64,000 nt of DNA from Pocillopora damicornis (GCF_003704095.1 NW_020843716.1:186001-250000), one strand, 5' to 3'; shown: positions 16,674 through 63,633, numbered from the stretch's first letter. Notes: generated by a model from the letters alone, not told the origin. Numbers and translations: made by a program.

Positions 16674-17705
16674 TCATTTACAGAAGTTCTTTTTACAGAT
16701 TTTACTAAGCTCACGCGAAAAATTTCGAAGGAAAATTAGGCAAATACATGGATTAACTGCACAATATGAAGAGGCTAATATCCGCGAGATATATCGCATG
16801 ACTTTCTGTATCTTACTACACTCGGGAACCGGTCTTAGTGAAAAGAGGTCAAGGAAAGAAAAAACAACATAAGGAGTCCAACATATAAAAAGTGCCGTTA
16901 CAGTAACGGCGGCCATTCGGTGCAATTTTTTGATACGTTCTCGGTTTCGTCTTTTTCCCTTTTCGGTACGACTTTCAGCCAGTTTATCCTTGCGTGAGCC
17001 GCATACTACAATAGCCGATAGAACAGAGATTGTAAATAGTGGTATTAACAGTACTGTGGTGAATAAAAAAATATTGTAGCGAAGGTGCGCCGATTCGTCT
17101 TCAAAAGCTGGCTCCCAGGTAGGAATGCACAATTGGATCTTGCTGCCGTTGGAGTGGAACGGAATTAGGCGCATGATGTAAAAGTACGGTGCATGAATTG
17201 CTGCAGACGTGATCCACGTAGAAATGATTGCTCTCCAGCGTACATTGAGCGTGATTTTCTTATAGAGCATGGGATAAACAATCGCTAAGAGACGCTCAAC
17301 GAAGATTACGACCAGAGTCTGTGTCGATACCGCCAATGACATGTCACTAAGAAAAGTACACATCTTGCACAGAAATACGCCTCCACTTCCATGAACGAGA
17401 AAAGCGCTGGACCTGATGATTTCTCTTGTTATCACGCGTGGAATTAGAAAGATTGCCATTAACAAGTCAGACGCAGCCATGTTGACAATAAGAAGCATCA
17501 TAGAATCCTTCGCGCTTAAAAACGCAGTGATGAGGAAGGTGTTTCCAAGCAAGGCAACCAGCAGAGTGAGAACATGTATCACTATTGTAACTTGCTCTGG
17601 ACCTACAGGAGCTTCATCATCGGCACAAAGATTTTCTAAAAAGGTGTCGTTGCGGCTCGCATTTTGACTGTTTTCCAGACGATCTGCAGAGACGTTTGTA
17701 TTCAT
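16674..17705 (-). CDS. Orphan class A GPCR, 343 aa
   Basis: 7TM; GN, NMAASDL, ERL, CWTP, NPCIC; clear paralog of the other cluster members. Confidence 0.95.
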   Translation of the reverse strand: MNTNVSADRLENSQNASRNDTFLENLCADDEAPVGPEQVTIVIHVLTLLVALLGNTFLITAFLSAKDSMMLLIVNMAASDLLMAIFLIPRVITREIIRSSAFLVHGSGGVFLCKMCTFLSDMSLAVSTQTLVVIFVERLLAIVYPMLYKKITLNVRWRAIISTWITSAAIHAPYFYIMRLIPFHSNGSKIQLCIPTWEPAFEDESAHLRYNIFLFTTVLLIPLFTISVLSAIVVCGSRKDKLAESRTEKGKRRNRERIKKLHRMAAVTVTALFICWTPYVVFSFLDLFSLRPVPECSKIQKVMRYISRILASSYCAVNPCICLIFLRNFSRELSKICKKNFCK

Positions 17706-34102: not shown

Positions 34103-36569
34103 TACACTTGCTCTTTAATTTTAATAACAAATAAGTCTAGTGGAGCTAATCAGGCCACAAAATAAAATCAATGTCACCGAAGCGAATTGTTTGAAGATCT
34201 TTGAAATCGATTGAAGATCGATCGGTATTTCGAATTTTTGATTTCGGCTATATTTCCACAACTGCGTTTCGTAATGTTCAAGAAAAGAAATAGAAAATGT
34301 TGTTACATTGATTTCGAGAATAACCCGTCAGTTACATTTACACAAAACTTTGTTTCTATTTCTCTTTTCATTAAACAACTTCTTTTGCGAATGAGAGTTT
34401 CATTCCAGCTTCCGCGAGTTATCTAATCGGTAGGGAGTCAACGCTCGACGGGAAAGGGGGCAAGCCAATCAGATTGCCTGTGTTTTACGATAGTTTAGTG
34501 AGCATTTAACTAATTTAAAAGGTATAGAGCGCCAATGATCCCTGAAGACCGCAAATATCTTGAGTCATCCGCCTACGCCTGTCGGATCGTTTTTGCGAAC
34601 GTGACATTTAAGAAAACGCCCGAACACTGCTATTTTTAACTTAAACTTTGCCTCAGTTACTCGACTGGAGCGAGGTCTCCTGTCAAACCCAGTTTCTGAA
34701 AGTATCTTGCTCGGCATACGTGCTCAAACTCCCTTGCTTCCCTCTGTCCGAGGGTTTCTGTAAGTCGTGAATATAGCATACACAATATGTGAGCAATATG
34801 AATGAAATTTCATGAAAATTTAGTCTAACTAAAATTGTTAAAGATTTGCTTTTCAAGTTGGCCTAAATCAATTCAGGCTCAACTCCGTCCAATTTTCCCT
34901 ATATACATCCTGTCATAGTTTTCCTCGGCTGTTGTCTATTTAATATTACCATCTTTTAAATTCCTTATTTTAGGATTGTAAATTATCAGTTCATATTCCC
35001 TTTGACCTGCATTTGACAGGTAGTTGAAGAAATAGCGTAATTACTCGATGAAACGCAGCGGTGTTAATCAATAGTTTAGCGTTTTGATGCGGCCTCTACT
35101 CAAAATACGTTTTCATTTCTTAGACCATGAAAAATATCTCTATAATTTACTCGTTAATCATGACCATGCCGCACTACAAAAACATGGTTAAAGTTGCAGT
35201 ATCCTACTCTTTATTTTATTGAAATGAAATACACTTATTTATGCACTTGGGTCAGATGCAAAGTAATTTCCTCGTTACGTTTCATGAGTAATACGTACGG
35301 CACATGAGACGAAGTTCTGCTTGCTGTCACAGTGAAATACCGGAAGACGAGGGCGATTAAGAGAGACTTCCTAATTCCCCTTCTTCTCTCCACCTGGGAA
35401 TCTCCACGCAATTTTTGAAACATTGTATTGTTTAGCTGGCCATACAGTTTGGTAAAACAAGTTGCATCAGAATTAAAGAAACTTATTTGAATCATGATTA
35501 TTAACAGGAATGACAGCTATCAATGGGTCCACTTACCCCCCGACCATCTATACACGGTTTATTGCAAAGTGCGACAAGAGTGGTTACAAAATGCGATAGC
35601 TTTCGGCGTGATGGTCGCAGTGTGCGACAGTTTTTTTTTCTTATAAAGTGCGATAAGTGTTTACAAAGGGAAAATGTTATTACAGAGAGCGACAGAAAAT
35701 ATCTTGAAGTGAGGCCAAGACTTACGGCAAGCCGGCCGCTTTCAATTAAAACAGTATCGAATGACCACAAGAGAACACGAGTGATCGTGATATGTCTGGA
35801 GACTTTAGTACTGTCTTTGTTTCTATACACGCTATAAAGATAACGGGCTCGTATTTATGATAGAAATAACTCATTACTTCGAACTCAGAACGGTCACCAG
35901 TTAGCGATCGGGTTAAGATATATAATATAAGATATATAAGCGGGTTAAGATATATAAACACGGTAAGCTTTTTAGCCATCTTTCAAAAACCGTTAGAACA
36001 GACATTGCCACAGGGGTCGTCGCTGTGTCCGCTTTGTATGACATAGCGGAGTGATATGAATTCAGGTGTAACAGCATGATTTGTTCTCAATCTATCGCAG
36101 AAGTTGAAGTTAAGAACTTTTTGAGTCTTATCTCTCAAGGTACATGTGAGTGCCTTAGTCTTACTGCCTCCTAGGCATGAGTCGTTAAAAGCGTTCAATG
36201 ACTCTGATTAACAAGTGTTACATAATTTGGTGGCGTCATTTCCTCTCAAGGACGTCACGCAGACTACTTAACTAAGTAGTGTAAATGAGTCTCCTGTATT
36301 ATTTATAGTCACATCTTTTTCTTGAGTTATTAACGGAGAAAGGACCCATTTAACTTAAGCTCTTTATTGGAATTCGTAGGATTGGCCACCTTTCTGATGT
36401 GTTGAAAGTAACTCAAGACACAAGGGAACGATTTAAGGGCCATAGAAGCTGCAAATGCTCCATAATAATCCTTTGTTAGAGTTCGTAGCTACGGACGCTG
36501 CGGTGAAACCATCCTAGTGTGACCTATGACGGGAGGAATATTTCATTCCCTCTAAAGACGGAGCGAAGA

Positions 36570-37547
36570 ATGCTTGGAAACAATTCCTCAACGATTTTGC
36601 ATCGACCTGGTTCAGACAGCAATGAGACAAAGTGTGCTGCTTTCACGGTTGGACTAGTTGAAGTTTATATCACAATCCATTTTGTCACTATTCTGGTGTC
36701 CTTGGTGGGAAACATTCTTCTGATTATTTCCTATGTGAGAATGAAGGAAACGTTAATGCTCCCTATCGCCAACATGGCTGTATCTGACCTGCTGACTACA
36801 CTTTTTCTAATGCCTCGTCTTCTTAGACGAGAGCTCACCGGATCCAACGATTTCCTCATTCGTGGAGTTACAGGTACATTACTGTGCAAACTATGCTCCT
36901 TCCTAAGCGACATATCGCTATCTGTGTCGACCCAGAGCTTAGTACTCATAGCTGCTGAGCGATTTCTCGCGATTGCTTGTCCAATTTTATATAGGAAGGT
37001 AATGACGGTGAAAAGACGCTATCTCTTCGTAGGCTTAACATGGATAATATCCATGGGAATTCATTCGCCATACTTTTACGCTTTCCGTCTGTCTACTAAT
37101 AATATTTGTGAAATGAACTGGGAACCAGCTTTCGATCATAAGTCGACGCAGCCACGCTACGTGCTTTTTCTTTTCGTAACAGTTTTGCTTCTACCGTTAA
37201 TTACTATCTCTGTGCTTTACTGCATTTTCGGCGTCAAGATTCGGCGAGATAAAGTAGCTTCGTCTCGAACCGAGAGAGGGACCTTGAGACACCAGGAACG
37301 CAGCAGAAAGTTACAAAGAATGGGAATAGCTACTGTAACGGCGTTCTTAATCTGTTGGCTCCTTTATATAGTGATAAATGTTTTCAAAGAGCTTTCTTCA
37401 AATACTGATCATGAGTGTAGCCAAGGTTTTAAGATAGTAGACAATATATCTCGCGTTTTAGCAAGCTGTTACTCTGCTGTAAATCCCTGTATTTGCTTTA
37501 TATTTGTGAAAAGCTTTTCTCGTCAACTTTTCGCGTTATGCAGATGA
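36570..37547 (+). CDS. Orphan class A GPCR, ~325 aa from ATG 36570, C-tail truncated
   Basis: 7TM; NMAVSDL, ERF, CWLL, NPCIC; the ORF-track start at 36519 is a GTG; closest paralog is 43575-44729. Confidence 0.92.
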   Translation: MLGNNSSTILHRPGSDSNETKCAAFTVGLVEVYITIHFVTILVSLVGNILLIISYVRMKETLMLPIANMAVSDLLTTLFLMPRLLRRELTGSNDFLIRGVTGTLLCKLCSFLSDISLSVSTQSLVLIAAERFLAIACPILYRKVMTVKRRYLFVGLTWIISMGIHSPYFYAFRLSTNNICEMNWEPAFDHKSTQPRYVLFLFVTVLLLPLITISVLYCIFGVKIRRDKVASSRTERGTLRHQERSRKLQRMGIATVTAFLICWLLYIVINVFKELSSNTDHECSQGFKIVDNISRVLASCYSAVNPCICFIFVKSFSRQLFALCR

Positions 37548-43574: not shown

Positions 43575-44729
43575 ATGATTTCTTCAAACGCAAACAACAT
43601 ATCCGTGGTTTTGGACCATGCTGGTTCGGACAGAAATGATACTTCTACGCCAACAAAATGTGCCGCTTTCACTGTTGGACCCATGGAAATTTATGTCACA
43701 ATACATGTTCTCACTCTTTTAGTGTCCTTGGTGGGAAACATTCTTATCATTGCTGCTTATGTGAGAATGAAGGAAAATATTTTGCTCCCTATCGCCAACA
43801 TGGCTGCATCTGATCTGCTGACTGCACTCTTTCTAATGCCTCGCCTTTTAACAAGAGAGTTCACTCGATCCAACGTTTTCCTCGTTCGAGGAGGTACAGG
43901 TACATTTCTGTGCAAGATGTGTACTTTTCTAAGCGACGTATCGTTGTCTGTGTCGACCCAGAGCGTATTGCTTATAGCCACTGAACGATTCCTTGCTATT
44001 GTTTATCCACTTCTGTATAAGAAGGTGTTCACGGTGAAAAGACGCTATCTCTTCGTCGCTTTAACATGGATAGCTTCCATGGCGATTCATTCGCCATACT
44101 TTTACATTTTCCGTCTGTCTGCCGATAACACGTGTCAACCCAACTGGGAACCAGCTTTTGATCATGAGTCGACGCAGCCACGCTACCTGATCTTTCTATT
44201 CATAACAGTTTTGTTTTTACCGCTGCTTTCTATTTCTGTGCTTTATGGTATTATCCATGTTAAACTTCAGAGAGATAAATTGGCTTCGTCTCGAACTGAG
44301 AGAGGGGCTGTAAGACATCAAGAACGCAGCAGGAAGTTACAAAGGATGGGAATAGCTACTATCATTGCGTTCTTACTTTGCTGGACGCTTTATATTGGAA
44401 TAAGTGTTTTCAAACTATTTTCCCCAAATGCTCAACAGAATTGTAATATAGGTTTCAGGATGGTTGATCATATTTCTCGAGTTTTGGTAAGCTGCTATCC
44501 TGCGGTAAATGCGAGCATTTGCTTCATTTTCGTACAGGGCTTTACTCAGCAGCTTATAGGTATGTGTAGACGAAAACGCCAACCATCAGTCACTACTGAA
44601 ATAGTACAAGATTGGTCTGCGGAGAACAACTGCAGTCGCATACGATCTGAATCAGCGCAAACATTGAGCTCGTTACTGATCACGAGAAACGGGAACAATT
44701 GCTCACTCGTTGATTCCCATCTAGTCTAA
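43575..44729 (+). CDS. Orphan class A GPCR, 384 aa
   Basis: 7TM; NMAASDL, ERF, CWTL, TM7 NASIC. Confidence 0.95.
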   Translation: MISSNANNISVVLDHAGSDRNDTSTPTKCAAFTVGPMEIYVTIHVLTLLVSLVGNILIIAAYVRMKENILLPIANMAASDLLTALFLMPRLLTREFTRSNVFLVRGGTGTFLCKMCTFLSDVSLSVSTQSVLLIATERFLAIVYPLLYKKVFTVKRRYLFVALTWIASMAIHSPYFYIFRLSADNTCQPNWEPAFDHESTQPRYLIFLFITVLFLPLLSISVLYGIIHVKLQRDKLASSRTERGAVRHQERSRKLQRMGIATIIAFLLCWTLYIGISVFKLFSPNAQQNCNIGFRMVDHISRVLVSCYPAVNASICFIFVQGFTQQLIGMCRRKRQPSVTTEIVQDWSAENNCSRIRSESAQTLSSLLITRNGNNCSLVDSHLV

Positions 44730-46067: not shown

Positions 46068-47168
46068 TCAAATAATATGCGTGGGCAGCTTTTTCCTATA
46101 TCGTCGCATTTTACCCCCATTTGTATCGCGTTGATGGTTCCGTTTGCACATTGCACTCAATTCGCGAGAAAAGACTTTTAGGAACATAAAACAAATACAA
46201 GGATTAACAGCGCAGTAAGAGGTTACTAACACCCGAGATATAAAATAAATTATTTGAAACGTTTCGCTGCATTCAGGAACTGACGTAGGTGAAAAAAGCT
46301 GCAGAAAAGTAATAACAACAAAGAGCGTCCAACATGTCAAAAACGCTGTTAAAGTAGCTGTGACCATCTTTTTTAAATTATTGTTACGTTCATATTTTCT
46401 GCGAGCTCTATTTTCACTCAGACCTGTCACCATTTTGTCAACCCTCCGAAGCTTAATCATCGTCGTAAGGCACAAGATTGCCACCACAAGGAGGGGTATA
46501 AATACAACTGTAACGTATAAAAAGGTGACATAGTGTAATTGAGCTGATCCATTGCTAAAGGCGGGTTCCCAGCTTGGCACACAAAACAAGGTTCCTGTGC
46601 CATTTTGTTTTTTATGTGTAATCAGTCGAAAAATGTAGAAATAGGGCGAGTGCAATGCCATGGCCAGGATCCACGTGACGGCAATGAGCACATAGCGAGT
46701 TCTCACGGTGACTTTCCTGTACAAGAAAGGATACACTACAGCCAAGAAGCGCTCCGCGGCGATCAATATCAAGTTCTGTGTTGATACCGACAGAGACACG
46801 TCACTCAAGAAAGTGGACATCTTACAGAGAAGTAGTCCTCCTAATCCGTGAACAAGGAAGGCGTTGGATCTGGTGATTTCTCTTGTTATCAAGCGAGGGA
46901 TCAGAAAAACTCCGACAAATAGATCAGAGGCCGCCATGTTGGCAATAAAGACAGCGATCTTTTGTTTCATTCTTGCGAACGCAAGTATAAGAAGTGTGTT
47001 TCCTGCTAGAGCAATTAACAACGTAGAAACATGTATTAAAACCATTGTTACTTGTATCGGACTCATGTTTACTCCAAGTTTTTCGCAATTTTCTTGTGGA
47101 GAAGTTGTGGTGTTGTGGAAACCTCCAACGTCCAAATTATCAGAGGAAACATTTACTCCGAGAGCCAT
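46068..47168 (-). CDS. Orphan class A GPCR, 366 aa
   Basis: 7TM; NMAASDL, ERF, CWTL, NPCIC. Confidence 0.95.
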   Translation of the reverse strand: MALGVNVSSDNLDVGGFHNTTTSPQENCEKLGVNMSPIQVTMVLIHVSTLLIALAGNTLLILAFARMKQKIAVFIANMAASDLFVGVFLIPRLITREITRSNAFLVHGLGGLLLCKMSTFLSDVSLSVSTQNLILIAAERFLAVVYPFLYRKVTVRTRYVLIAVTWILAMALHSPYFYIFRLITHKKQNGTGTLFCVPSWEPAFSNGSAQLHYVTFLYVTVVFIPLLVVAILCLTTMIKLRRVDKMVTGLSENRARRKYERNNNLKKMVTATLTAFLTCWTLFVVITFLQLFSPTSVPECSETFQIIYFISRVLVTSYCAVNPCICFMFLKVFSRELSAMCKRNHQRDTNGGKMRRYRKKLPTHII

Positions 47169-53535: not shown

Positions 53536-53853
53536 TTACATTAAGGCCTCATTATATTAAGAGTTTGTCACTAATTTTCGACTACATATGCTTGTCACGT
53601 GCAGTTGAATGTAGTTACTTGGCAGACGGAGGAGGAAAAGGTTATCAATATTTATGCAGTTTGTCAATACGATTGCACAAGGACAAGCATCGTCTGACAG
53701 AAAGACCAACAGCGTCATTACTGGTTATTTCGGTAAGGTGAATACTGAAGCATGCACTCTTTGATCTATGGATGAATTAGGCATTTCGGCCAGAAAAATA
53801 CTTCCTTAAGTTCCATGTTTTCTCTGCTTTTTTTCAGGCTTTGTGATCAAGTT

Positions 53854-54966
53854 ATGAATTCAAGTACACAATTCGCTTTAGAGGCTTCGAAGGCTGTGAA
53901 TGCCAGCGACAACAGTACCCTTACTCTGGAAAGTTGTGGTATTGTATTTCCAAATGAGATGATAATCACTATACACTTTTTGACGCTCTTTACGTCCTTG
54001 ATAGGAAACACTCTCCTCATCGTTGCATTTCTGAGAATGAAAGAAACGATACTGCTCCTCATTGCCAACATGGCTGCATCTGACCTACTCTTAGCGCTGG
54101 TTCTTATGCCTGAATATATTATATATGAACTAACTGGGTCCTTCGAATACCACGTTCGTGGTGGTGTAGGTACTTTTCTGTGTAAGATCTGCCCTGTTCT
54201 AAGCGACGCATCATTGTCAGTATCAACCCAAAGCTTAGTCTTGATCGCAGTCGAACGGTTACTGGCACTAATGGCTCCTGTACTCTATAGGAGGATAACC
54301 GATAGTAAACGGAGGATTATCGTCATCTGCACTTGGATTGTGGCCATACTTCTTCACTCGCCCTATTTCTACGCGATGCGACTAGCTTCGATCCATCACG
54401 AAGGTACCTTTATCCAAGTTTGTTATCTAGACTGGGCACCAATTTTTGAACACAGAACAGCACAACTTCGTTATGGTATTTTTTTATACATAACCGTTTT
54501 AATTGTACCTATTCTTGTAATTTCTGTGCTTTACGCTGTAATCGTTTTCAACCAACGAAATGACAAAATGGGCTCCAGTCGAGGTGAAAAGTGTGCAATA
54601 CGAAAGAAACGAAGCGTCAAGAATTTAAAACGGATGGCTGTAGCTACAGTAACGGCACTATTTTTATGCTGGACGCTTTATATCATAGTGTTTACATTCA
54701 AACTTGTCTCTCCAGAGACAGTTCCCAAATGTAGTAAATTTTTCCAAGCGGTGGAAAATGTGTCTAACTTGATAGCAAGCTGTTATTGTGCAGTTAATCC
54801 CTCCCTTTGTTTCATTTTCATCAAAAGTTTTTCGCGTCAGCTAAGTTTTTTGTGTCAACGAAAATCTAATCGACAGCGTGGCGCGAAGTGTACTCACGCG
54901 AATGTCAAAATGGGAGAATCTGGTTCTGTCAGCTGTCTGACGAGATTAAGTTTACGTGGCAGTTAA
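53854..54966 (+). CDS. Orphan class A GPCR, ~370 aa from ATG 53854 (probable 5'UTR intron 53733-53837)
   Basis: 7TM; NMAASDL, ERL, CWTL, NPSLC. The ORF-track ATG at 53815 lies just before a pyrimidine tract ending ttttcag (53837), with a donor gtaag at 53733. Confidence 0.93.
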   Translation: MNSSTQFALEASKAVNASDNSTLTLESCGIVFPNEMIITIHFLTLFTSLIGNTLLIVAFLRMKETILLLIANMAASDLLLALVLMPEYIIYELTGSFEYHVRGGVGTFLCKICPVLSDASLSVSTQSLVLIAVERLLALMAPVLYRRITDSKRRIIVICTWIVAILLHSPYFYAMRLASIHHEGTFIQVCYLDWAPIFEHRTAQLRYGIFLYITVLIVPILVISVLYAVIVFNQRNDKMGSSRGEKCAIRKKRSVKNLKRMAVATVTALFLCWTLYIIVFTFKLVSPETVPKCSKFFQAVENVSNLIASCYCAVNPSLCFIFIKSFSRQLSFLCQRKSNRQRGAKCTHANVKMGESGSVSCLTRLSLRGS

Positions 54967-57472
54967 ACTAAATAATCCTTATCAATAGCTCTGTCAAAAC
55001 AAACTGAAATGTGATATTAAAGAAGGAAAAAACAAGAAGGTGAAACATAAATTTATTATGCTTGAATTGTATATCGCCCTCAGGCAAAGCGACTTTTGTA
55101 TCTTGGTTATTATTCGACTGAAACTTTCCCTTTTGTTAAGCCTCTTCGTTTTCTTGATACTTGGCACAATATTATGGAAAGGAAAAAAGGTATATCTCCA
55201 ATCTATTTGCATAGGAAATGTTGCCCACATAAAAATCATAATATATCAAGGAAATTCTAGTCAAAGAGACCCCCGGAACACCTGCGGTGTTAATGGAAAT
55301 GTGTCTAGTTAACATTTAAGTGTGAAACGTACGTATGGAGTTTTAATTTCCCAGTGATTGTCGTTAAGATTATTTTGTTTCAAAATAAGTACGTTAAAAG
55401 TACAAAGTGTCAAAAATGTATCTCATTGACTTCCGTTAGAAGTCAGGTTTCGAATATCCTCGTCACTTGTCGACCACTGGCCCCTCGGCATATGGTAAGT
55501 AAGATGGCCTCTTTTACTCGAAATATGACTGAGAAGTTTAACATCAGGCAAGGTGAGATAGCCGGTGCAGTTCAGGCCTTTGATATTAGTTCATCCAGCT
55601 ATTTGTCAGAGGTAAACCACTTAATGTGCTTCCATATACTGCGATAAAGTCCATTACTTGATATCTAAGATTAAACAGCATCAAGCATAAATGGCATAAC
55701 TTACTTGGTATGGAAATGTTCACTTCATTGTTCCGGAAGCCAAGTTGTGAGGCTTTGTTATTAAAGAGCTGATTGAGATTTTAAGAAAGGAGTCGATTTT
55801 GGAGCAGACGATTTGGAAATCTCTGACGCTGCTTTCTCTATCTTTTGGCGGGATAGTTTAGCCCCTTCATGATCACATTGCGCTTACTCACGAGTCCTTT
55901 AAAAGGCTTTATATTGCTAAAGATCGTTGCAATGAGGAGAGGATGATATTCAGTACTTTTTTTTTTGTTCAATTTGAACAGAAAGCTAATACTATGTTTT
56001 GGGAGCGAAATTGATTTTTGCATTAAATTTTAGCCTGAAACTAAATGTATACTAAATCAAAAAGGAATAAATTAGACATATCAATCACATTTACTTTCGA
56101 CTTTTGCCAGCTTTTGGTGTCAACCTTTGCAGTTTTCGCTTTTGAATTCTTCATGGAGTGGAATTACCAATAATTTCCCATGGAATAACACAAATGCGGC
56201 AGCGAAATCTAACCACGTAGAGAAATATTGATTATATTTTCCCTACCGTGTCTTATTTGTGTGCATTCATTGTAGGCGTCTTAATAAGCAGGCTATAGAT
56301 GGCTTACTCTGAGACAGGAAAAAGAATCTGCGGCGAACGCCATGGACTGTTCATTTTTCTTACAGTGCTGTGTGAAACGTATAGTTTGAGGGTAGAAAAA
56401 ACCATCACACTTTTGGTCACTCTCTTTTTTTACTTCTGCGTTAAGTACAAGAAGATAATTGAAAGGAGAAATTTGAATTATGTTATTTTCACTTTTATCT
56501 TCCGCCTTTCTCCATTTCTAAGTTGGAGAAAAATTCAAATGTTGTTTTTCTTGAATTATCAGCCGTACTGGCTGTTGATTCCTTTTTATTAATCTTATCA
56601 ACTTCTACTTGTTATTACTATAAGATCTTAACTATAATCAGTCTTTCAATTGAATATATTTAACTGCCACTCTTATGTCAAACTGCTATTTCCTGTCGCC
56701 TTTTTTAAAGGATCATAGAAACATTAATTAGCTTTATTGGGAGAGGGGGAAGGGGAAGTCGAGTAAAAATTTATAGTGACACAGCCNNNNNNNNNNCCCC
56801 CTCCACAAGGCGATAAGTAATGCAGGTCCCTTGTTCTTTGCAGCCAATCGATCTTGAAGGAATATATTTAATGATTCAAAATGTAGACTTTTGATGACAT
56901 TACCCATAATCCTTTAGCGTTGCAGTTTATGCTGGAAGAGAGCTGTGTTGTAAAGCATTAGCTGATTACATTCTTGATTGTATTGTTTTCGTGTGTTCTC
57001 GATTGATTTTGGCGGATTACACTTCAAGTTGTTAAAATTCTTGGCTAGTTTACATTCTCTGGCGTCTCGTGAGATTGTTTGTTGTAATAGATCTTAAGAA
57101 CAATTATATTGTGTCTAAAATTTTTTTTTCAGGACTACCAGTATATCAACAGTTGTTGCTGAAACTTGACCAAAATTTAACTGTCAAACTTCTATCGGTT
57201 ATCAGTGTTCATTAAACAAAAACAGATTACGGAAATCGACACCCCTTATTCATACCGCTGTAAGCGTGCCCACCACATCGGATACATTATACGTTAGTGT
57301 GAAATAGGGTTTATTGATCATGACAAGAGAATACAATCTTTTGTTCGTGATTATTCTAGGCAGTAGATGAACGAGAAAACTCATACAAAAGGAGAGAAAT
57401 TTATAATATTTCCTGTCGCAAAAATAAAACTGAAAACTATCACAAATGACATGACTGTGCTTCCTTTCCATT

Positions 57473-59567
57473 TTAGACCGAGGATCCTTTCTCCTTATTC
57501 TTTGGCTGAATTATTTTTAGTATTCCTTGGACTAACAGCTGTGCAATTTCGTTATCATCCGGATGCTTCCCAGGCCGCTGACTTTGCTCTGATGCAGCCT
57601 CTTTAGATCGGTTATCGTCAGATGCTACATCATCTGCACGATCTGCCTTGTCATCTTCCTTTTCACCAGATTTCGAATCGTTAAAGTTTCCTTTTTCCTT
57701 GACTGGTTTTCTCAAAGAGATCGGAAAATCTTCGTTTCCAATACTCAATGTGGCCTCACCATCAGGAAAATTAGCTGGAAATTCTATTGCAAAATCTCGT
57801 TGTGCAAAACTTAGTGCAACGCATAGATCGTGGGTCTCTTTGTCTCTGCTTGTACCAGTTACTTGAAATTTCCCCTGGAGAGCGCCATGGATCTTTCCAA
57901 AAAGGTCCATGCCTTCTTTCACCGAGTACCATTGCTCTCTTTTTGTTTCGGCCTGTTGCGATGAAGTTGAAGTCCAGCGAAACTCGCCCGTTACCAGATC
58001 ATTGTGATATTTCTTTTGTGTTCCACTGAAAGGATTACTGAGGCGGAAAGCGCTGTCTTTCGGCAGTACCTCTGTGAAAATAAATCATAGAATGTTTACA
58101 ATAATTGGAAGAACAGATGAGTAAATAATCCAAGTGTAGGTTCTTAACTAACCGTATTTTGAAAGCATCCTGAGTCTTAGAAATATTCAACATAGCACTG
58201 AAAATCTAACGTTGCAATTACCTGAGAGCCACTACAGGGCAATGGCTTTTGCTGAAAACGATTAAAATTTTGGCCATTTTACAGCTGACGGCTAATGAAT
58301 TTCTGTTAAGTTAACAAAATAATTTTACTTATTTACGCCTGACGGCTCAATTATTTTGCTGCTTTACAACAAGACCCTCTTTTTTAAACAACCACGAAAC
58401 AGTTAATACGCGGTAAAACCGTCATTTGCGCCTAAAATTCTCATTATCGTAATTTCATTACTGTTATTTTCCCCCTATGGAGATATGAAAATAGCTAATC
58501 TTTCGATTATGCCTTGACGGGGAAGGGAGAGCGTTGCAAGACAAGACGAAACATGATCCTGCTCAGCAGTATGTTAAAAAGAAAAATTTATACGACTGAT
58601 AGGGGGAATCTAATCTTGCCAAGTTTCCCATTATTGCAAGGTCCTGTGTTTGGTGGAAATCATGATAACGAGGGCGCGTGTGTGCACCGATTCATGAATA
58701 ATTATTGTAGTAAATACTCTAACGGCGACTGGTTCCCCAATTTTTTAAAATAAACAATCGAATATTTAAGGATATTACCGAGTATTCCCTTCAATGAAGC
58801 TTCCTTTTCAACGACACAAACTTGCTTCACGTCCAGTGTTTCGTTGTCCACACCAACCTTCATATATACAAAGCAGGGCTTTCCTTCACCTAGGTTTACA
58901 CCTTAAACAAAATATATGAATCATCATGAACTAAACAAAATGAGACCTCGCAGTGAACTTTTCACTACCTGCAGAACTTAAGTGGCTATATAGTTACTCT
59001 TCTTGGCCAAAAGCTAACTCAATTTGATGGACAAGACATCTATTGCTTAACAATTGTTCATTTTAAGTAGAGGGAAGGGGTGAGTGAGTATTCTATTTCG
59101 TTTGCCTCCAGTTCTAGGAAATTGATTCTGTAGTCAGGCCTCGTTTATATTTCACAATCGTATAGTCAAATTTCATTTGCTTCGATAAATTTTGAAATAT
59201 TCAACAAGGCGAACCACCCTCCCAAAAAATTAAATTAAAGACGAAACAAACCGAGCGAAAGTGGTACTAGTAGTTGACTTTAGCACATAGAATAAAATAG
59301 ACACTGTTACTTCCCCTAATAGGACACTGAATTTCGTTTCTTACCGCCAGATTCTTTTGTGCTCCATATCCCAACGCGTCGAAGAGCATGGGGTTTGAAC
59401 AACTCTTCTTCATCTTCGTCCTTAAGACTACCAGTGATATACTGCACGACTGGCTGATTTGAATGAGTCCACAGACCAAACAGATGTCCGCTCTCAATCC
59501 GTTTTTCTACAACATGTTGCTTAATCTGCCTAAGTTCACCCTCGTGGATTGTCACTGTCAGACTCAT
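57473..59567 (-). CDS. 3-exon gene, ~310 aa: N-terminal degenerate JAB/MPN-like domain + E2/RWD-like domain + acidic tail (exons 59567-59345, 58889-58779, 58071-57473)
   Basis: Canonical GT-AG introns, both phase 1 (G|gtaag, tag|GT, G|gtaat, cacag|AG), join into a 933-nt stop-free frame: MSLTVTIHEGELRQI...ESGHLFGLWTHSNQPVVQYITG...VGIWST...CFVYMKV...LKGILEVLPKDSAFR...QWYSVKEGMDLFGKI...IEFPANFP... An alternative in-frame exon 2 acceptor lies 12 nt upstream. Confidence 0.8.
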
Positions 59568-59696
59568 CTTGGCTCGTACTGTCAACCGAAAAATATCAGT
59601 AAATAAGTCGCAATACCGAAGCAGCTTGGTGCGATCAGAGCAAAATGTTTTTCACTTTTTATTGTGATGAGCTTTTTCATGGGCCGTAAATAACAT

Positions 59697-59751
59697 TTCT
59701 AAGAAATCGTGACGTCATGTGATACTCTGAGCCTACCGGTTTTTCCCGGAA
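59697..59751. promoter_or_regulatory. Putative promoter cluster: GAS TTCTAAGAA (59697-59705), CRE TGACGTCA (59710-59717), GAS TTCCCGGAA (59743-59751)
   Basis: Exact consensus matches 130-185 bp upstream of the JAB-like ATG. Confidence 0.55.
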
Positions 59752-60027
59752 ATGTTTACATGTCAGTTAAGGATATTCAGATTTTATTAAAGTGAGTATA
59801 TGTAACGAGAGTTAATGGTTCCATGACAAATACCAGCTAGAGAAGAAATGGAATGAAAAACCAAAGAAATCAGTCACAGTGTCATAAATTCACAAATCCT
59901 ATTTTCTCCGCCTGAGCTTGTTGAATCAACTCTTCGTCAAAGCTGTATGAAAATCGCAAAAATTTCGATCGGCTCTTGCGAAGTTTTGAAATAATAATGC
60001 ATCTTATTTGACGGAAAGTGCGAGCTA

Positions 60028-60038
60028 TTTCGGTTTCC
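60028..60038. promoter_or_regulatory. ISRE/IRF-type motif TTTCGGTTTCC in the divergent intergenic region
   Basis: Matches GAAANNGAAA on the minus strand. Confidence 0.4.
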
Positions 60039-61035
60039 AAATACAGCCACGACTATCGCTCGGTCCCGAAAGTGTGTAGGATTAATAATTGCTCTGGCGA
60101 ATCACGTTTTTGCGGTTAAATTTTGCTGTTGTCCTGTCTTTCTAACCTGCGTAAACGAAATGATTTGGGTTCTAGGAAAAAGGCTTGGACGAATCAACAT
60201 TTAACATGGCAATCTTAATTACGAGCCACAAAAGTTGTACAAAGCGAAAGTCTTTAAATCTGCCTTCCCACTTCCCAAATCCCTGCCAAAAGATTATTCT
60301 AAAAGCAATTTCGAAGCTAAGAGGTATGACATAGTGCTTGCTTAATATGGAGCAGCGAATGAACTCGCTAAATAAGCAAACCGGTTTATCCAATATCTTA
60401 AAACTTTACATTAACTGCGTCTATAACAATTTACAATTTGTCATCAAACATTTCTTTAGAGTGGGATTAGAGAGCTCAATGACAACTAGTGTCAACTGCA
60501 TAATAATCTTAGGATCTTTTATTTTTGTCTAACAAAAATATATACATTAAAGACGTATCAGTTCGTAGATTTAGGTTAATAGAATATTAAGTCGATCAAT
60601 CTTTGGAATTTTTCCTTGTGTCCTACTACAGTTAAGGGGCGATATTAATAGCAGGGACCCTATAATTTTGAAAGCAGCATTTCTCTCAGAGGTTCGATTA
60701 TATTGAGGGAATTGAAGGCATGACATTTAAATGTTGTCATGAAAAAAGGATTGAATTGATAAATGTAGTTTATGTACATGAAAAGTACATAGACAGACGA
60801 AATTATGTGACCTTACATGGTAGTGCAGCCCTGCTCGGGGTGGACATGACGTAGCGAAATTGCTCGAGGCATTTTATTTCCTCAAATTGCTTTCTTTGCG
60901 CATGAGCGCATCATTCCTAATTCAAAAAACAATATTTAATGTTAACAACTATACCTCCCTCACTTAAACTGGAGAATCATTGCTGTGCACATCCTATCAA
61001 GAGAACAGAACAGCTAAAACAACCAACTTGAAGTG

Positions 61036-61485
61036 ATGCCCTGGTCACAGGCCCAGAGACAGAGGCTCGGCTTTGAGAAAACGTTGCTGGAGAGCTATTT
61101 TCGTGACAGAGTGACATGGATTAGTCCCGGAGACCAAACGATAGTGGAAGTTCGAGCTACATGCACCAACGACAGACAGTACACGCTGAGGATTTATCTG
61201 CCAACTGATTTCCCCAATTCCTGTCCCAACATGGTTGTCAAGGCATCGGCTAGATTGAGGGCGCGTAACGGAGATCTTCTAGAGTGCTATCCAGGAGACA
61301 ACCACATCGGGAAAACCGTAGAAGGCTACACAGGCATCTGCCATTTCAGGCCAAATAGATGGAGGAACGATAATACTTTGTATCAGGTGACGATGAAGGG
61401 TCTGATATGGCTGGAAGCTTATGAGGCGCATCTTCGCACCGGCCAACCCTTGAGCCAATTTTTGACCGATATGCCAGATCGTTAA
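61036..61485 (+). CDS. Non-canonical E2/UBC-fold protein, paralog 1 (149 aa), putative catalytic Cys102
   Basis: UBC-like pattern in order: QRLGFEK helix, YTLRIYLPTDFPNSCP, NH...G..GICH, W...NTLYQV; ~58% identical to paralog 2 by manual alignment. Confidence 0.85.
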   Translation: MPWSQAQRQRLGFEKTLLESYFRDRVTWISPGDQTIVEVRATCTNDRQYTLRIYLPTDFPNSCPNMVVKASARLRARNGDLLECYPGDNHIGKTVEGYTGICHFRPNRWRNDNTLYQVTMKGLIWLEAYEAHLRTGQPLSQFLTDMPDR

Positions 61486-63070
61486 AATATAAATTATGGT
61501 TGGTCGGGTAGACAGAACGATTCGATAGTTGTACACCAAACTGTTCATAGACTTTATAGAGAAGATGCTTGCTTTCATTCGATCAAGATTACTGAATGAT
61601 AACTTTTGGTTGTAGTTGTAAGCGGAAAATACTTAAATATGGATTACAGCGATGTCATTTTTTCTTTGTTCCAGTACGAAGACAATGAGTTATACATGGT
61701 CCTCTCTCCCGGGTAACGATAGTTCATGAAATAAACGATCGGCAGAGCAATATTTCAGATCTACAATTTAACAATTGTAAGGTGTTGGTCTTAAATTCAA
61801 CATACACTAAAATAGGCTTGTCGTTCAAAATTGCGTTTCTAGTCACGATTTTTCTGTAAATTCACCCAAAAGCATTGAATTTCGCAATATTCTTGGAAAC
61901 CAATGTAAACAGATGGATGCAGTGTAATATTTCAGAGAGAGATTTTCAAAAAGTCTAATGCTGAAAGGACCGCTCGTGATAACACATTTGTCTGGCGATA
62001 TATCTAATCTGGAAATGCCAATAATCACGATGTGGGTCCCTTCTTCTATGCGACAGGAGCGATAAGAAAGCGCAACTGAATGCTAATATTCATTCATAGA
62101 AAAATTAATGCAAAGTCGGAAGTTTGCATTTCACTTCGAAATGATACTCTCAACTTCACTAGTTATTTGGATTTTTCAGTCTCTTGTTATGGAGTTATCA
62201 TTTTCTCTGTTGTAAAAAAAACTCTCAGCTTTGAAGACTAAGTAAATAGTGGGTATTTACAAGCTTTTCTAGCATTCCATGAAACGAGTGTTGTTTGCGG
62301 ATAGGCCTTTGGGGGGAAACGAACATCTTGTTCGATTCCAAGAAGAACTCACGTGTATAATTTGAGTCAAACTACCGGTCTTTCTAAGAAAAAACATATA
62401 ATTAGAAAACAATTTTTTAAGTATCTTTCCTAGGACGACTTTCATATTCCTCTCATTTTTTAATTGGGCAGGTTTATAAGAGTTCTGGGTCCACTCCAGT
62501 ACGGTCCTTTCCGCCCCAGCTCATTGCAGAGTTCCATCGCGCTTCGATAGAGTTCTTAGGCATGAAAAATTTTGAATGATACAAGGAACTTGAACCATGA
62601 CCGCGTAACAATGGTAGGTTAACAACATTTTCGCCGAACTTTCGAGAGCGTTCCGATTGTTATTGTCTTTTGTTTGAATCACCATACCATGCAACATGTA
62701 TGCTAGATATTATTTTCTTTCCTTATCCTTTCTTCTTTTTATTTGATGGAAATGTTGCCCTTGTCGACGGGCTCAACGAAGATAAAATCAGAGCGTGTGT
62801 TCTAAGAATTGTTCACTGTCCACATTGAGACAGAATTCGTCATTAGAAGTGCCCGTAAGTTAAAGTTTAAATTTTTAAGACGGTCAGTTTTAGTTTCCGT
62901 TGAAATCAGAAAGAAATTAAAATAAATTACCTGCTTCGAAGAGTAGCAGTCAGTCGTACACAAAAGTCTGTTGTATTGTAAACAAAGTTTTCCACGAAAA
63001 ACGCTCACGCATCATTTACTTTTATCTTCCTGAATTTCCGAGAGCTACGCAATGCTATCTACGCATGCTC

Positions 63071-63087
63071 CCATTTCCGGGAAATGG
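63071..63087. promoter_or_regulatory. Extended palindromic STAT/GAS site CCATTTCCGGGAAATGG ~110 bp upstream of E2-like paralog 2
   Basis: TTCCGGGAA core (63075-63083) inside a 17-bp palindrome. Confidence 0.55.
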
Positions 63088-63189
63088 AAGCGGTTCGAAA
63101 ATAGTTGTCCGCAGCATTTGAATTTAGCGAGTGTTCCTCGTTTGAAACCTGTACAGACAAACTAAAAGTTGCTTTTATCTTTCTTCAAA

Positions 63190-63633
63190 ATGTCATGGTC
63201 AGCAACTCAGCAAAAAAGGCTTGGATTAGAGAAAAATATTCTCGAGAAGTACTTCGGTAACAGAGTTTCATGGATCAATCCGACTGGCGATACGAAGGTT
63301 GAAGTAAGAGTGACAACCACCAGTGATAAACAGTATACACTCAGGGTGTATCTTCCTGGAGATTTCCCAAATTCATGTCCACAGATGATAGTCAGTAATC
63401 CTTCGTCCTGTCTAAGAGCGAAAGACGGTTCTTCGCTGAGCGGAATGAGTGGGATTAACCATACATTAGGCAGTATAGATGGTTGCACTCAGATCTGCCA
63501 TTTTAACTCGTCCTTGTGGAAAGATAACAACACACTGTACCAAGTGGTTATGAAAGGGCTGATATGGCTGGAGGGGTACGAAGCACATCTTCGCACCGGG
63601 CAACCTATAAATAAATACTTGCAAGAGATGTAA
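63190..63633 (+). CDS. Non-canonical E2/UBC-fold protein, paralog 2 (147 aa), putative catalytic Cys103
   Basis: KRLGLEK, YTLRVYLPGDFPNSCP, NHTLGSIDGCTQICHF, WKDNNTLYQV, MKGLIWLEGYEAHLRTG; ATG in aaaATGt context. Confidence 0.87.
   Translation: MSWSATQQKRLGLEKNILEKYFGNRVSWINPTGDTKVEVRVTTTSDKQYTLRVYLPGDFPNSCPQMIVSNPSSCLRAKDGSSLSGMSGINHTLGSIDGCTQICHFNSSLWKDNNTLYQVVMKGLIWLEGYEAHLRTGQPINKYLQEM

Follow-up and report, generated by a model that had tools for sequence, protein, structure and literature searches.

Gene organization of the locus

The window, a 64,000-nucleotide stretch of the Pocillopora damicornis genome, contains three genes of interest between positions 57473 and 63633: a spliced minus-strand gene (the dead-MPN/RWD gene) and two intronless plus-strand genes (E2-like A and E2-like B). 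Exon 1 of the minus-strand gene (59345..59567, start codon at 59567) encodes most of an MPN (JAB-like) domain, is followed by a GT donor at 59344-59343 and aligns with the N-termini of P0122 and P0123. Exon 2 (58779..58901), which is in phase 1 at both ends and bounded by an AG acceptor and a GT donor, encodes the end of the MPN-like domain and is collinear with residues 78-118 of P0122. Exon 3 (57473..58071; coding 58071..57476, stop codon 57475-57473) contributes a linker, a possible RWD/UEV-like domain in which no Cys is conserved, a disordered acidic stretch and a C-terminal helix. Both introns are of the GT..AG type and in phase 1, and P0122, a full-length database relative of 315 aa, is collinear through all three exons. 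RNA contigs of four runs, drawn from four studies, reproduced exactly the two junctions, 58071^58779 and 58899^59343 (+2 cut). Part of exon 3 is also homologous to each unit of a fourfold repeat protein encoded on contig C3576.

E2-like A (61036-61485, 149 aa) and E2-like B (63190-63633, 147 aa) are 58% identical and both carry an invariant Cys-His pair, Cys103-His104 in B. An RNA contig spanning 61020-61607 covers E2-like A, and contigs for E2-like B were present in all four runs. A third tandem copy, which shares 89% identity with B, is found 4.4 kb past the end of the window. The start codons of the dead-MPN/RWD gene (59567) and E2-like A (61036) face each other head-to-head at a distance of 1469 bp. 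The initial annotation, which described a JAB-like/E2-like fusion gene head-to-head with two tandem intronless E2-fold genes and ATGs about 1.47 kb apart, therefore held for the arrangement, the distance and the placement of all three genes. The divergent promoter region (59568..61035) contains TTCN3GAA at 59697, 59743 and 60170, and nine TTCN3GAA (GAS/STAT-type) sites are clustered 5' of E2-like B (61890..63083). No cognate ThiF-type E1 and no small protein of the FDP/Gly-aromatic type (described below) were found in the window or in the next 20 kb, the latter containing only the third E2. Since E1, modifier and intact JAB are all missing from the window locus, its E2s could have other partners.

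Fold and conservation of the E2-like proteins

The E2 genes are not chance ORFs, because the family comprises 127 close relatives (E down to 1e-91) and 490 representative clusters in a library of 1.8 billion proteins. The AlphaFold2 model of E2-like B reached a pLDDT of 93.3 and a pTM of 0.88, and every top Foldseek match of this model was an E2 enzyme (probability 1.0, E ~4e-3). VIA-align returned 38 of 48,161 aligned chains at Z >=8, all of them UBC, UEV, RWD or UFC1 folds, with BubB, the Tsg101 UEV domain, CBASS CdnG-E2 and UFC1 as the best matches (Z ~10). On the evidence of the predicted model, E2-like A and B adopt the UBC/E2 fold.

Membership of the UBC/E2 group is also supported by a conserved cysteine: Cys103 is invariant in 25 coral sequences and in 28 mixed coral and bacterial sequences. 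The coral alignment retains Cys103-His104 and an upstream His without exception, the Cys-His pair being found in every coral E2 copy, and the Cys and upstream His are likewise invariant across the 28 coral and bacterial sequences. Equivalence of Cys103 to the canonical E2 cysteine was not matched residue by residue in the structure, and its catalytic role is inferred. The HPN motif is absent from both proteins, which have instead the invariant His 12 residues upstream of the Cys. Pfam RWD and UQ_con gave only weak signals (UQ_con 12.5 bits on the E2s, below the cut-off of 27), no canonical family passed, and the curated libraries gave no recognition of the E2s above threshold. The dN/dS value was 0.105 for E2-like A against its Oculina ortholog and 0.08-0.31 for E2-like B, and 0.08-0.15 for the orthologue pairs tested (one JAB and the E2s). 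The genes are thus under purifying selection (dN/dS 0.08-0.31).

Domain composition of the dead-MPN/RWD gene

The coral dead-MPN/RWD family was aligned by hhalign with a bacterial JAB-RWD protein at a probability of 97.8% (E 1.1e-12) over 219 columns across both domains. The structural model used for the fusion protein was that of the relative P0122 rather than of the joined window protein, and it was poor (pLDDT 55.7). All top Foldseek matches of this proxy were MPN domains, with the MPN domain of CSN6 at Z 7.2, and the N-terminal part of the gene product is accordingly assigned the MPN fold, as predicted from this low-quality proxy. Every element of the JAMM motif (catalytic Glu, HxH and S..D) is missing in the window gene and in six of six coral orthologs, whereas intact JAB relatives carry E-T-G-G-D, W-H-S-H-H and P-S-x-x-D. 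The window MPN domain is therefore a catalytically dead MPN-minus pseudo-peptidase whose catalytic residues have been lost.

The C-terminal domain of P0122 was predicted as a helix, five short strands and a late helix (local pLDDT ~80). It matched FANCL, Tsg101, VPS37A, the Cap2 E2 domain, Ubc9 and the Yih1 RWD domain at Z 5.5-6.7, but unrelated folds matched equally well. In hhalign, the RWD-like domain and the E2 family gave a probability of only 1.3%, the F-P-x-x-F-P strand alone being aligned, so no sequence-profile link exists between them, and the alignment of the RWD-like domain with its relatives showed no conserved Cys after that strand. An RWD/UEV-like fold for this domain is hence a model-based possibility. 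The fold assignments of the initial annotation, UBC for the E2s and MPN for the fusion gene, held on modelling and Foldseek search; its description of a JAB-like domain fused to an E2-like domain held only in part, since the MPN fold is supported but the catalytic residues are gone, and the second domain is possibly RWD/UEV-like and has no conserved Cys.

A homologous four-gene operon in bacteria

Profile searches with the E2 family recovered bacterial members, including one from Ca. Cryosericum (E 9e-24) and one from a Planctomycetota genome, and the nearest non-coral relatives of the E2s (E 1e-20 to 1e-24) are genes of a bacterial operon occurring in at least seven phyla. The operon consists of a JAB/MPN peptidase gene fused to an RWD/UEV-like domain, an E2 of ~145 aa with a Cys-His active site, a small protein of ~65 aa and a ThiF-type E1 of ~420 aa. 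The small protein has an L-x-F-D-P motif and, ~30 residues from the FDP motif, an invariant Gly and then an aromatic residue, 2-13 residues short of the end. Loci were fetched from Caldisericota and Planctomycetota, together with 15 further loci of 14 genomes; the E2 adjoins the JAB-RWD gene and the E1 in most of them, and the small-protein gene was detected in about half. The adjacency of an E2 and a JAB-RWD gene is found in bacterial loci, in the window (head-to-head) and in Oculina, and the window E2s and fusion gene are homologous to an adjacent gene pair of the bacterial operon. This homology, and the neighbourhoods of the bacterial relatives, support the suggestion of the initial annotation that the module may be of bacterial origin.

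The operon JAB, E2 and E1 score best against PADLOC/NCBIfam models built from CBASS-type proteins and against ThiF/MoeB, not against eukaryotic E1/E2 families, and all scores against the CBASS-type models are below curated cut-offs. No conserved effector gene was found among the operon neighbours (97 Pfam families among 80 neighbouring proteins, the 25 commonest being inspected for DUF6527). The operon has no demonstrated function, and no published description of it was found.

Other components in the coral genome

An intronless E1 gene is located on contig C687 as a 429-aa open frame with 51% identity to the E1 of Cryosericum (E 8e-97). It encodes a single ThiF domain in which GxGxxG and both CxxC motifs are preserved, as is a crossover-loop Cys that hardly varies within the family, and it lies beside another E2 gene and two JAB genes that are intact. 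The coral genome has a minimum of five intact JAB genes, one of which passes the Pfam Prok-JAB gathering score. Small-protein genes on contigs C268 and C687 share the invariant positions of the bacterial ones, lone E2 copies are present on C4113 and C2983, and one E2 lies beside a JAB and an E1 in two corals. The coral genes of the system are mostly intronless. Consequently, all four components of the operon type are present in the coral genome, split among loci. The idea that the E1 and Ubl might lie beyond the 64 kb failed for the E1 in the downstream 20 kb, the E1 being on C687, and the expectation of a Ubl has to be corrected, as the likely modifier is the short FDP/Gly-aromatic protein, which is not of beta-grasp type. 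The family was also observed in Exaiptasia.

Residence in the animal genome, promoters and phylogeny

Six rhodopsin-type GPCR genes are found in the window on the same contig, and the GC content of the locus (0.38-0.40) is host-like. The gene order of the window, including the head-to-head arrangement, is kept beside a GPCR gene on a 34-Mb chromosome of Oculina patagonica, so that the linkage is conserved in a second cnidarian, and a C687-type locus occurs on a 1.39-Mb contig of a second coral. Splicing in polyA RNA, GC content, GPCR neighbours and Oculina synteny show that the genes belong to the coral itself.

The promoters contain TTCN3GAA at 3.3/kb versus 0.40/kb in background DNA, an approximately 8-fold enrichment common to all components; control words were not enriched in the promoters, and the TTCN3GAA pattern was repeated in two other corals. 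These dense STAT-type sites, recognized by sequence, suggest co-induction, plausibly in immunity or stress, which is an inference.

The E2 tree, which is unrooted, splits into a eukaryote-containing and a bacterial group (48 versus 91 representatives). The eukaryote-containing group is supported by an SH-aLRT of only 87 and most of its members are without a taxon label; the eukaryotes named so far are hexacorals only.

Origin and proposed function

The window most likely holds one locus of a dispersed conjugation system of bacterial source, which was acquired by a hexacoral ancestor and then domesticated. This reading rests on what is shown, namely homology, folds, catalytic-residue loss, exon-intron structure and splicing, conserved gene order, purifying selection and the enrichment of promoter motifs. 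According to the proposed mechanism, a JAB peptidase would trim the tail of the small protein to expose the Gly, the E1 would adenylate the exposed Gly end, and the modifier would be transferred in thioester linkage to the E2 Cys and from there to targets, the JAB also removing the mark. The coral copies have been duplicated and spread among loci, with three tandem E2 paralogs here (two inside the window), while the E1, the intact JABs, one more E2 and the genes for the modifier are on other contigs. The JAB-RWD descendant in the window has gained introns and lost every catalytic residue, and the resulting pseudo-peptidase would probably serve the intact JAB paralogs, or the E2s, as a scaffold or partner, much as MPN-minus subunits do for MPN-plus ones. 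Every biochemical step of this scheme is inferred, and so are its biological role and the direction in which the genes were transferred. The proposal of a protein-conjugation module is in this sense largely supported and extended, its chemistry being inferential, and its relation to immunity remains an inference.

Bacterial-derived genes could have been domesticated but uncoupled, the window E2s and dead MPN/RWD protein serving the host ubiquitin, NEDD8 or SUMO machinery or acting as non-catalytic adaptors, rather than working with a bacterial-type E1 and small protein. The lack of any E1, modifier or intact JAB at the window locus, its dead JAB domain and the solitary E2 copies on C4113 and C2983 speak for this, and UEV/RWD-type pseudo-E2s are commonly adaptors. 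We nevertheless consider it unlikely: the same genome keeps open frames for the cognate E1, for intact JABs and for modifiers, the tested JAB and E2 orthologue pairs have dN/dS of 0.08-0.15, one E2 stands beside a JAB and an E1 in two corals, TTCN3GAA enrichment extends to the promoters of all components, and the Cys-His is invariant in all E2 copies. Reverse transfer, in which the family originated in cnidarians or another eukaryotic group and moved to bacteria, is permitted by the unrooted division of the E2 tree and by the fact that E2, JAB and E1 are classic eukaryotic machinery. It is very unlikely given a compact four-gene operon in at least seven bacterial phyla, the greater sequence diversity in bacteria (91 versus 48 representatives), the restriction of named eukaryotes to hexacorals, the best scores of the components, which fall to ThiF/MoeB and to bacterial models of CBASS-type JAB, E2 and E1-E2 proteins instead of eukaryotic E1 or E2 families, and the mostly intronless coral genes.

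Ordinary eukaryotic E2/UEV and MPN genes that are neighbours by chance would fit the weak Pfam RWD and UQ_con signals and the eukaryotic UBC/UEV structures among the best fold matches. This explanation is also very improbable, as no canonical family scored above threshold, the closest relatives outside corals belong to the bacterial operon, the gene next to the E2s has its homologue next to the E2 of that operon as well, and the linkage is kept in Oculina. Bacterial contamination or misassembly, to which intronless genes with bacterial affinities might point, can be all but excluded by two GT..AG introns spliced in polyA RNA of four studies, a GC content equal to that of the host, six rhodopsin-type GPCR genes on the same contig, the same locus next to a GPCR gene in the 34-Mb Oculina chromosome and the C687-type locus within the 1.39-Mb contig of another coral.

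With a domesticated, dispersed system of bacterial source as the preferred reading, a bolder version is conceivable, namely that hexacorals run a complete STAT-inducible bacterial-derived tagging system, in which a short non-beta-grasp peptide, processed to a C-terminal Gly, would be activated by a ThiF-type E1, directed by dedicated E2s to viral or host targets, and regulated by expanded JAB, dead-JAB and RWD paralogs. If true, this would represent a new class of E1/E2-handled modifier and a rare whole bacterial conflict operon retained in an animal. CBASS Cap2/Cap3, Bil and Bub are bacterial E1/E2/JAB systems that have been discussed both as anti-phage defences and as kin or forerunners of eukaryotic ubiquitination. 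In the present case, an animal genome retains all four parts of one operon type, with window genes that are spliced and expressed and with genes under purifying selection, expanded into families and apparently co-regulated. The locus offers a testable example of how a multi-gene conflict system may have passed from bacteria to animals, together with a candidate new modifier that is non-beta-grasp yet served by E1/E2 enzymes, and the coral and anemone genes form a set for asking whether cnidarian innate immunity uses the system.

Comparison with known systems

BilABCD comprises a modifier, an E2, a JAB peptidase and an E1, conjugates via thioesters and has a demonstrated anti-phage role (PMC10557695, PMC11601596). 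Bil, which is Iyer 2006 operon type 6c, is likewise a four-component bacterial set, and the BilC-Ubl complex 8tyy was among the MPN fold matches. However, the Ubl of Bil is an ISG15-like protein of beta-grasp fold, its E1 is multidomain (IAD-AAD-CYS) and its E2 is of the CEHH type, whereas the present system has a single ~420-aa ThiF-type E1, a Cys-His E2 and a modifier too short (~30 residues from FDP to Gly) for a beta-grasp. Identity with Bil was rejected on these three grounds.

BubB (9eav_D) was the top structural match of the coral E2 (Z 10.2, rmsd 3.1, 113 residues), a JAB and an E1 are associated in Bub too, and the Bub JAB processes a precursor before use (PMC11601596). Bub differs in working via Ser/Tyr oxyesters without catalytic cysteines; its Ubl is fused to the E2 and its JAB to the E1, and it includes a DUF6527 protease. 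In the present system the E2 Cys is invariant and the E1 keeps its conserved crossover-loop Cys. DUF6527 was not seen among the 25 commonest of 97 Pfam families in 80 neighbouring proteins. An assignment to Bub (6E) was consequently rejected, given the invariant E2 Cys, the near-invariant E1 crossover-loop Cys and the lack of DUF6527 among those 25 families.

Pup is a short (~64 aa) non-beta-grasp modifier attached via its C-terminus. It is ligated by PafA, a glutamine-synthetase-like enzyme, without E1 or E2, unlike the small protein here, which has E1, E2 and JAB partners, shows no homology to Pup and is only inferred to be conjugated.

Pairs of MPN-plus and MPN-minus proteins with UEV subunits (Rpn11-Rpn8, CSN5-CSN6 and BRCC36-Abraxas with BRE) resemble the coral set in combining a dead MPN and a putative UEV/RWD-like domain with intact MPN paralogs in the same genome, and the best N-terminal fold matches were the inactive MPN subunits CSN6, Rpn8 and KIAA0157. 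There is no sequence-level kinship with these pairs, the window gene most likely descending from a bacterial JAB-RWD gene, and pairing of the dead MPN with an intact JAB is no more than a hypothesis by analogy.

Type II CBASS (Cap2/Cap3) and E2-only CBASS (CdnG-E2) provide the models against which the JAB, E2 and E1 score best in PADLOC/NCBIfam; Pfam E2-CBASS matches the bacterial operon members weakly, and structural comparison places CdnG-E2 and the E2 domain of Cap2 among the best matches. Identity with Type II CBASS was rejected, as NCBIfam Cap3 gave 17.8 bits against a cut-off of 200 and the E1 and E2 are separate, and no CD-NTase, nucleotidyltransferase or effector gene was seen among the operon neighbours. 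Cap2 is an E1-E2 fusion, whereas E1 and E2 are separate here and it is the JAB that carries a fused RWD-like domain. The presumed modifier here is a dedicated protein of ~65 aa, compared with the cyclase C-terminus in CBASS, and in neither system is the conjugated item a beta-grasp Ubl.

Structure and transcription of the window genes

The minus-strand gene of the window, termed here the dead-MPN/RWD gene, consists of three exons (59567..59345, with the start codon at 59567; 58901..58779; and 58071..57476, followed by the stop codon at 57475-57473), and both of its introns are of the GT..AG type and in phase 1. The database protein P0122 (315 aa) is collinear with all three exons, which confirms the gene model. 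Expression and splicing are shown by RNA contigs of four runs, drawn from four studies, in which both predicted junctions were present exactly and spliced contigs were much deeper than those retaining introns. These assembled contigs document presence and splice junctions, not expression levels. On the plus strand, the intronless genes E2-like A (61036-61485) and E2-like B (63190-63633) encode paralogs with 58% identity, and 1469 bp separate the divergent start codons of dead-MPN/RWD and E2-like A. The tandem array has a third E2-like member, which shares 89% identity with E2-like B and was found on the same contig 4.4 kb beyond the window end (stretch L009, 4080-4520, i.e. G000:C351:254080-254520). 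The window contains a 10-N gap at 56787-56796.

Fold and active site of the E2-like proteins

RWD, UQ_con and E2 signals were obtained for the E2-like proteins from curated libraries, all of them sub-threshold; Pfam, PADLOC and NCBIfam returned no match at all for dead-MPN/RWD, nor for the small protein described below. In sequence searches of the PDB the E2 profile reached E ~1 at best and the JAB-RWD profile had no match. The E2-like model built from a 25-sequence alignment had a pLDDT of 93.3, and every top Foldseek match was a ubiquitin-conjugating enzyme. An exhaustive structural scan placed BubB, the Tsg101 UEV, CBASS CdnG-E2 and UFC1 at the top (Z ~10), and all 38 matches with Z >=8 belonged to the UBC/UEV/RWD superfamily. 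Every sequence of the coral E2 alignment has Cys103-His104 and a His 12 residues upstream of the Cys; this Cys and this His remain invariant when bacterial members are included, and the canonical HPN motif is absent from the alignments of coral and bacterial members. The two small window genes encode E2-fold proteins of unusual type with a conserved Cys-His, the fold being that predicted by the model. Separately, in the database proteins P0147, P0148 and P0155 two E2 units stand in tandem, and the first of them lacks the Cys-His.

A dead MPN domain joined to a probable RWD-like domain

Alignment with intact relatives shows that the dead-MPN/RWD protein has lost the JAMM residues: catalytic Glu, HxH and S..D are all missing. 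The framework around the lost residues is retained, as are the downstream L-x-G-E-S-x-F-R motif, the helix and the F-x-V-x-F-P-x-x-F-P strand. The exons were searched singly, not joined, and P0122 (59-77% identical to the window exons) was used as a folding proxy; its model was poor (pLDDT 55.7). The N-terminal part of this model matched MPN domains, chiefly inactive ones (CSN6, Rpn8, KIAA0157). The C-terminal part matched FANCL, UEV, VPS37A, Cap2-E2 and Ubc9 at Z ~6, and since unrelated folds appeared alongside, we regard an RWD/UEV-like identity as probable, not proven. Comparison of the RWD-like domain with the E2 family by hhalign was not significant. In the assembly of Oculina patagonica (stretch L026, 18385-18723) a stop codon interrupts the dead-MPN/RWD ortholog directly behind the F-P-E of its RWD-like strand, where the annotated protein P0127 also ends; the gene might be truncated there, an intron might have gone unrecognised, or the assembly might be in error.

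The initial annotation had proposed three genes in this stretch, with ATGs about 1.47 kb apart, comprising a JAB-like/E2-like fusion gene and two tandem, intronless, non-canonical E2-fold genes. The gene structures were upheld by exons, splice joints and spacing, the tandem E2 pair was upheld and extended by the third copy, and its E2 nature was supported by the fold matches and the absence of HPN. The fusion was upheld only in part: the MPN fold is present with its catalytic residues lost, and the second half is probably RWD/UEV-like.

A homologous operon in bacteria

A profile search with the E2 family recovered 490 representative clusters in 1.8 billion proteins, and its bacterial members include proteins of Ca. 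Cryosericum hinesii (E 9e-24) and of a Planctomycetota genome. In Cryosericum the gene order is a 376-aa protein with intact JAMM, the E2, a 66-aa ORF and a 419-aa ThiF-type E1. The coral dead-MPN/RWD family aligned with the 376-aa protein over both domains (hhalign probability 97.8%, E 1.1e-12); therefore, the coral gene pair is homologous to the bacterial operon pair, and the resemblance to bacterial operons suggested by the initial annotation holds as homology to adjacent operon genes.

When one genome was scanned for each prokaryotic species, at least 15 further loci were revealed in Pseudomonadota, Actinomycetota, Binatota, Bacteroidota and Chlorobiota, the number being a lower bound because the scan relied on a single peptide pattern from a narrow alignment. 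Chryseobacterium and Actinoplanes are among the genera with a version of the four-gene operon. Inspection of the bacterial gene neighbourhoods, a check proposed at the outset, showed that in most loci a JAB-RWD gene (310-390 aa) occurs together with an E2 and with an E1 (~420 aa, shortened in some draft contigs); in about half of the loci a gene for a small protein (~65 aa) was detected as well. Among 80 neighbouring bacterial proteins, a Pfam survey revealed no conserved fifth gene and no clear functional signal, the matches (CHAT, TPR, Cas, integrase, transposase) being scattered.

Components at other coral loci

When the coral genome was queried with the Cryosericum E1, a 429-aa open frame with 51% identity (E 8e-97) was found on another contig, C687. 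This intronless ThiF-type E1 gene (stretch L008, 4109-5398, plus) encodes GxGxxG and two CxxC motifs, and nearly all members of the E1 family share a crossover-loop Cys. The neighbours of this E1 within 7 kb are a further E2 (L007 7822-8262, minus), two intact JAB genes (L007 9199-9942 and L008 1105-2217, both plus), one of which exceeds the Pfam Prok-JAB gathering score, and small FDP-motif ORFs (L007 6373-6885; L008 6361-6603, minus; L008 6915-7268). Further JAB fragments are located at the contig end (L008 8003-9562).

On contig C3576, a kinase gene (L040 2303-3352, plus) is followed by an RWD-repeat gene (L040 3529-4980, plus), whose 483-aa product carries four tandem RWD-like repeats, each homologous to window exon 3 (E 7e-8 to 2e-6). 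After these come two intact JAB genes (L038 2929-5643 and 7341-8198, plus), and one of the encoded proteins has 904 aa with ~20 copies of a ~30-aa low-complexity repeat. Solo E2 copies are present on C4113 and C2983. A broken E1 remnant on C3895 (L034 4746-5264, minus) has residues 326-426 beside 10-68 and an in-frame TGA in the genome search. The window genes, the coral E1 and the intact JABs are homologous to operon components.

The initial annotation had seen no E1 or Ubl gene in the window, which held, and had supposed that they might lie beyond its 64 kb. That supposition failed for the next 20 kb, where the third E2 was the sole system part, no other component being found in the 15 kb after it; the E1 was located instead on C687, and the small proteins on other contigs.

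The small protein

The bacterial small protein comprises an N-terminal helix-like segment and an L-V-F-D-P-x-T-G-x-L motif. Some 30 residues past the motif stands an invariant Gly with Phe, Tyr or Trp directly after it, and the tail beyond varies from 1 to 12 further residues. By analogy, the arrangement recalls ubiquitin precursors, which are trimmed to a C-terminal Gly; judging from its length, the segment is too short for a beta-grasp fold. Its role as a modifier is inferred, no structure or complex being at hand. In an uncultured Pseudomonadales (L011 ~6450-6900) two units are arranged head to tail in a single ORF; both end R-E-G-F-F, a layout that calls to mind a polyubiquitin precursor. 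One database protein, P0262, has the motif region fused to an E2 of this family, with two FDP-type motifs N-terminal to the E2.

A search of the coral genome with the small-protein ORF of another eukaryote gave no match, and the coral small proteins were identified by reading the ORFs adjoining JAB genes. On contig C268, a gene whose 399-aa product pairs an intact JAB domain with a degenerate JAB-like second half (L039 3861-5060, minus) is followed by two small-protein genes (L039 2577-2984 and 379-744, minus; 121-135 aa). Their products keep all invariant positions of the bacterial protein (L, F-D, D, Gly + aromatic), which tie the coral small protein to the operon, and end A-Q-G-F-F plus nine residues. 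They are the leading coral candidates for the inferred modifier role.

A shared upstream motif

Over the full window TTCN3GAA occurs at chance level (33 sites, 32.6 expected), with 13 of the 33 sites within 59112-63083. For the 15 system genes of this genome, taking 800 bp before each, 37 unique sites were counted in 11.2 kb of upstream sequence (3.3/kb), an approximately 8-fold enrichment over the background of 0.40/kb in 117 kb of other DNA of the same genome; upstream of GPCR genes the density was 0.21/kb. Composition-matched simulations of the 15 upstream regions gave 6.9 +/- 2.8 sites, against 41 observed before overlap merging, and control words of equal composition were not enriched (ratios near 1). 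Enrichment was also seen in Oculina (2.3 vs 0.67/kb) and a second coral (3.75 vs 1.0/kb). The regions concerned are window 59112-63083 and stretches L007, L008, L009, L032, L033, L038, L039, L026 and L027. Promoters of paralogs are not independent; the enrichment covers unrelated gene families on separate contigs, and the sharing of the motif is shown. Binding of STAT factors at these GAS/STAT-type sites is inferred from the consensus only.

Animal ownership and selection

The rest of the window is occupied by six intronless rhodopsin-family GPCR genes (10817-11971, 16674-17705, 36519-37547, 43575-44729, 46068-47168 and 53815-54966; Pfam 7tm_1, E 1e-31 to 1e-37), and GC is 0.38-0.40 at every system locus. 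On a 34-Mb chromosome of Oculina patagonica, five tandem E2 genes are followed by dead-MPN/RWD, to which the E2-like A ortholog is oriented head-to-head, and the cluster has a GPCR gene as its neighbour; the JAB-E2 linkage, which had been proposed for checking in other cnidarians, thus held there. The C687 order E2, JAB, JAB, E1 is repeated on a 1.39-Mb contig of the second coral. The E2 family also occurs in the anemone Exaiptasia diaphana and in tandem clusters on large eukaryotic contigs, once with a small-protein gene. GPCR neighbours, GC and synteny show that the system genes belong to the animal. Selection is shown by dN/dS of 0.08-0.10 for E2 orthologs (dS saturated), and 0.28-0.31 for recent paralogs; exon 1 of dead-MPN/RWD gave 0.22, and one JAB gave 0.15.

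Origin, putative mechanism and relation to known systems

The E2 tree proposed as a check comprised 139 sequences and was unrooted, with most rows lacking taxon labels. All 13 coral rows grouped with 35 unlabelled representatives (SH-aLRT 87), and all 16 known bacterial rows fell in the other group of 91. The direction of transfer is an inference; passage from bacteria to corals is the likely one, because the compact operon occurs in many bacterial phyla with greater bacterial diversity, and because the named eukaryotes are all hexacorals and the coral genes mostly intronless. A 'thif family protein' of Seriatopora, which Bhattacharya et al. 2016 (PMC4878875) listed as one of the anthozoan genes with a bacterial origin, could be the coral E1 of this system.

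In the putative mechanism, the JAB would trim the small protein, the E1 would adenylate the trimmed form, the E2 would carry it on Cys103, and the small protein would be attached to targets and removed again by the JAB. By analogy with MPN-minus and UEV subunits, the dead-MPN/RWD protein may serve as a non-catalytic partner. An immune or stress role is conceivable. It is inferred, without functional data, from the part that CBASS Cap2/Cap3 and Bil play in defence, from the expansion of the gene families and from the STAT-type sites. Of the bacterial origin and immune function tentatively proposed in the initial annotation, the former is supported by homology and the latter remains only inferred.

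We found neither this operon type nor a cnidarian E1/E2/JAB module described in the literature searched, and the retention of a bacterial E1/E2/JAB conjugation set at several loci of an animal is unexpected. In PADLOC and NCBIfam the operon parts were nearest to CBASS-type JAB, E2 and E1-E2 models and to ThiF/MoeB, all below curated cut-offs. The operon architecture fits none of the five types of Iyer et al. 2006 (PMC1779556) and differs from those described for Bil and Bub (PMC10557695, PMC11601596). The operon belongs among the bacterial E1/E2/JAB conjugation systems, as a variant undescribed in that literature.
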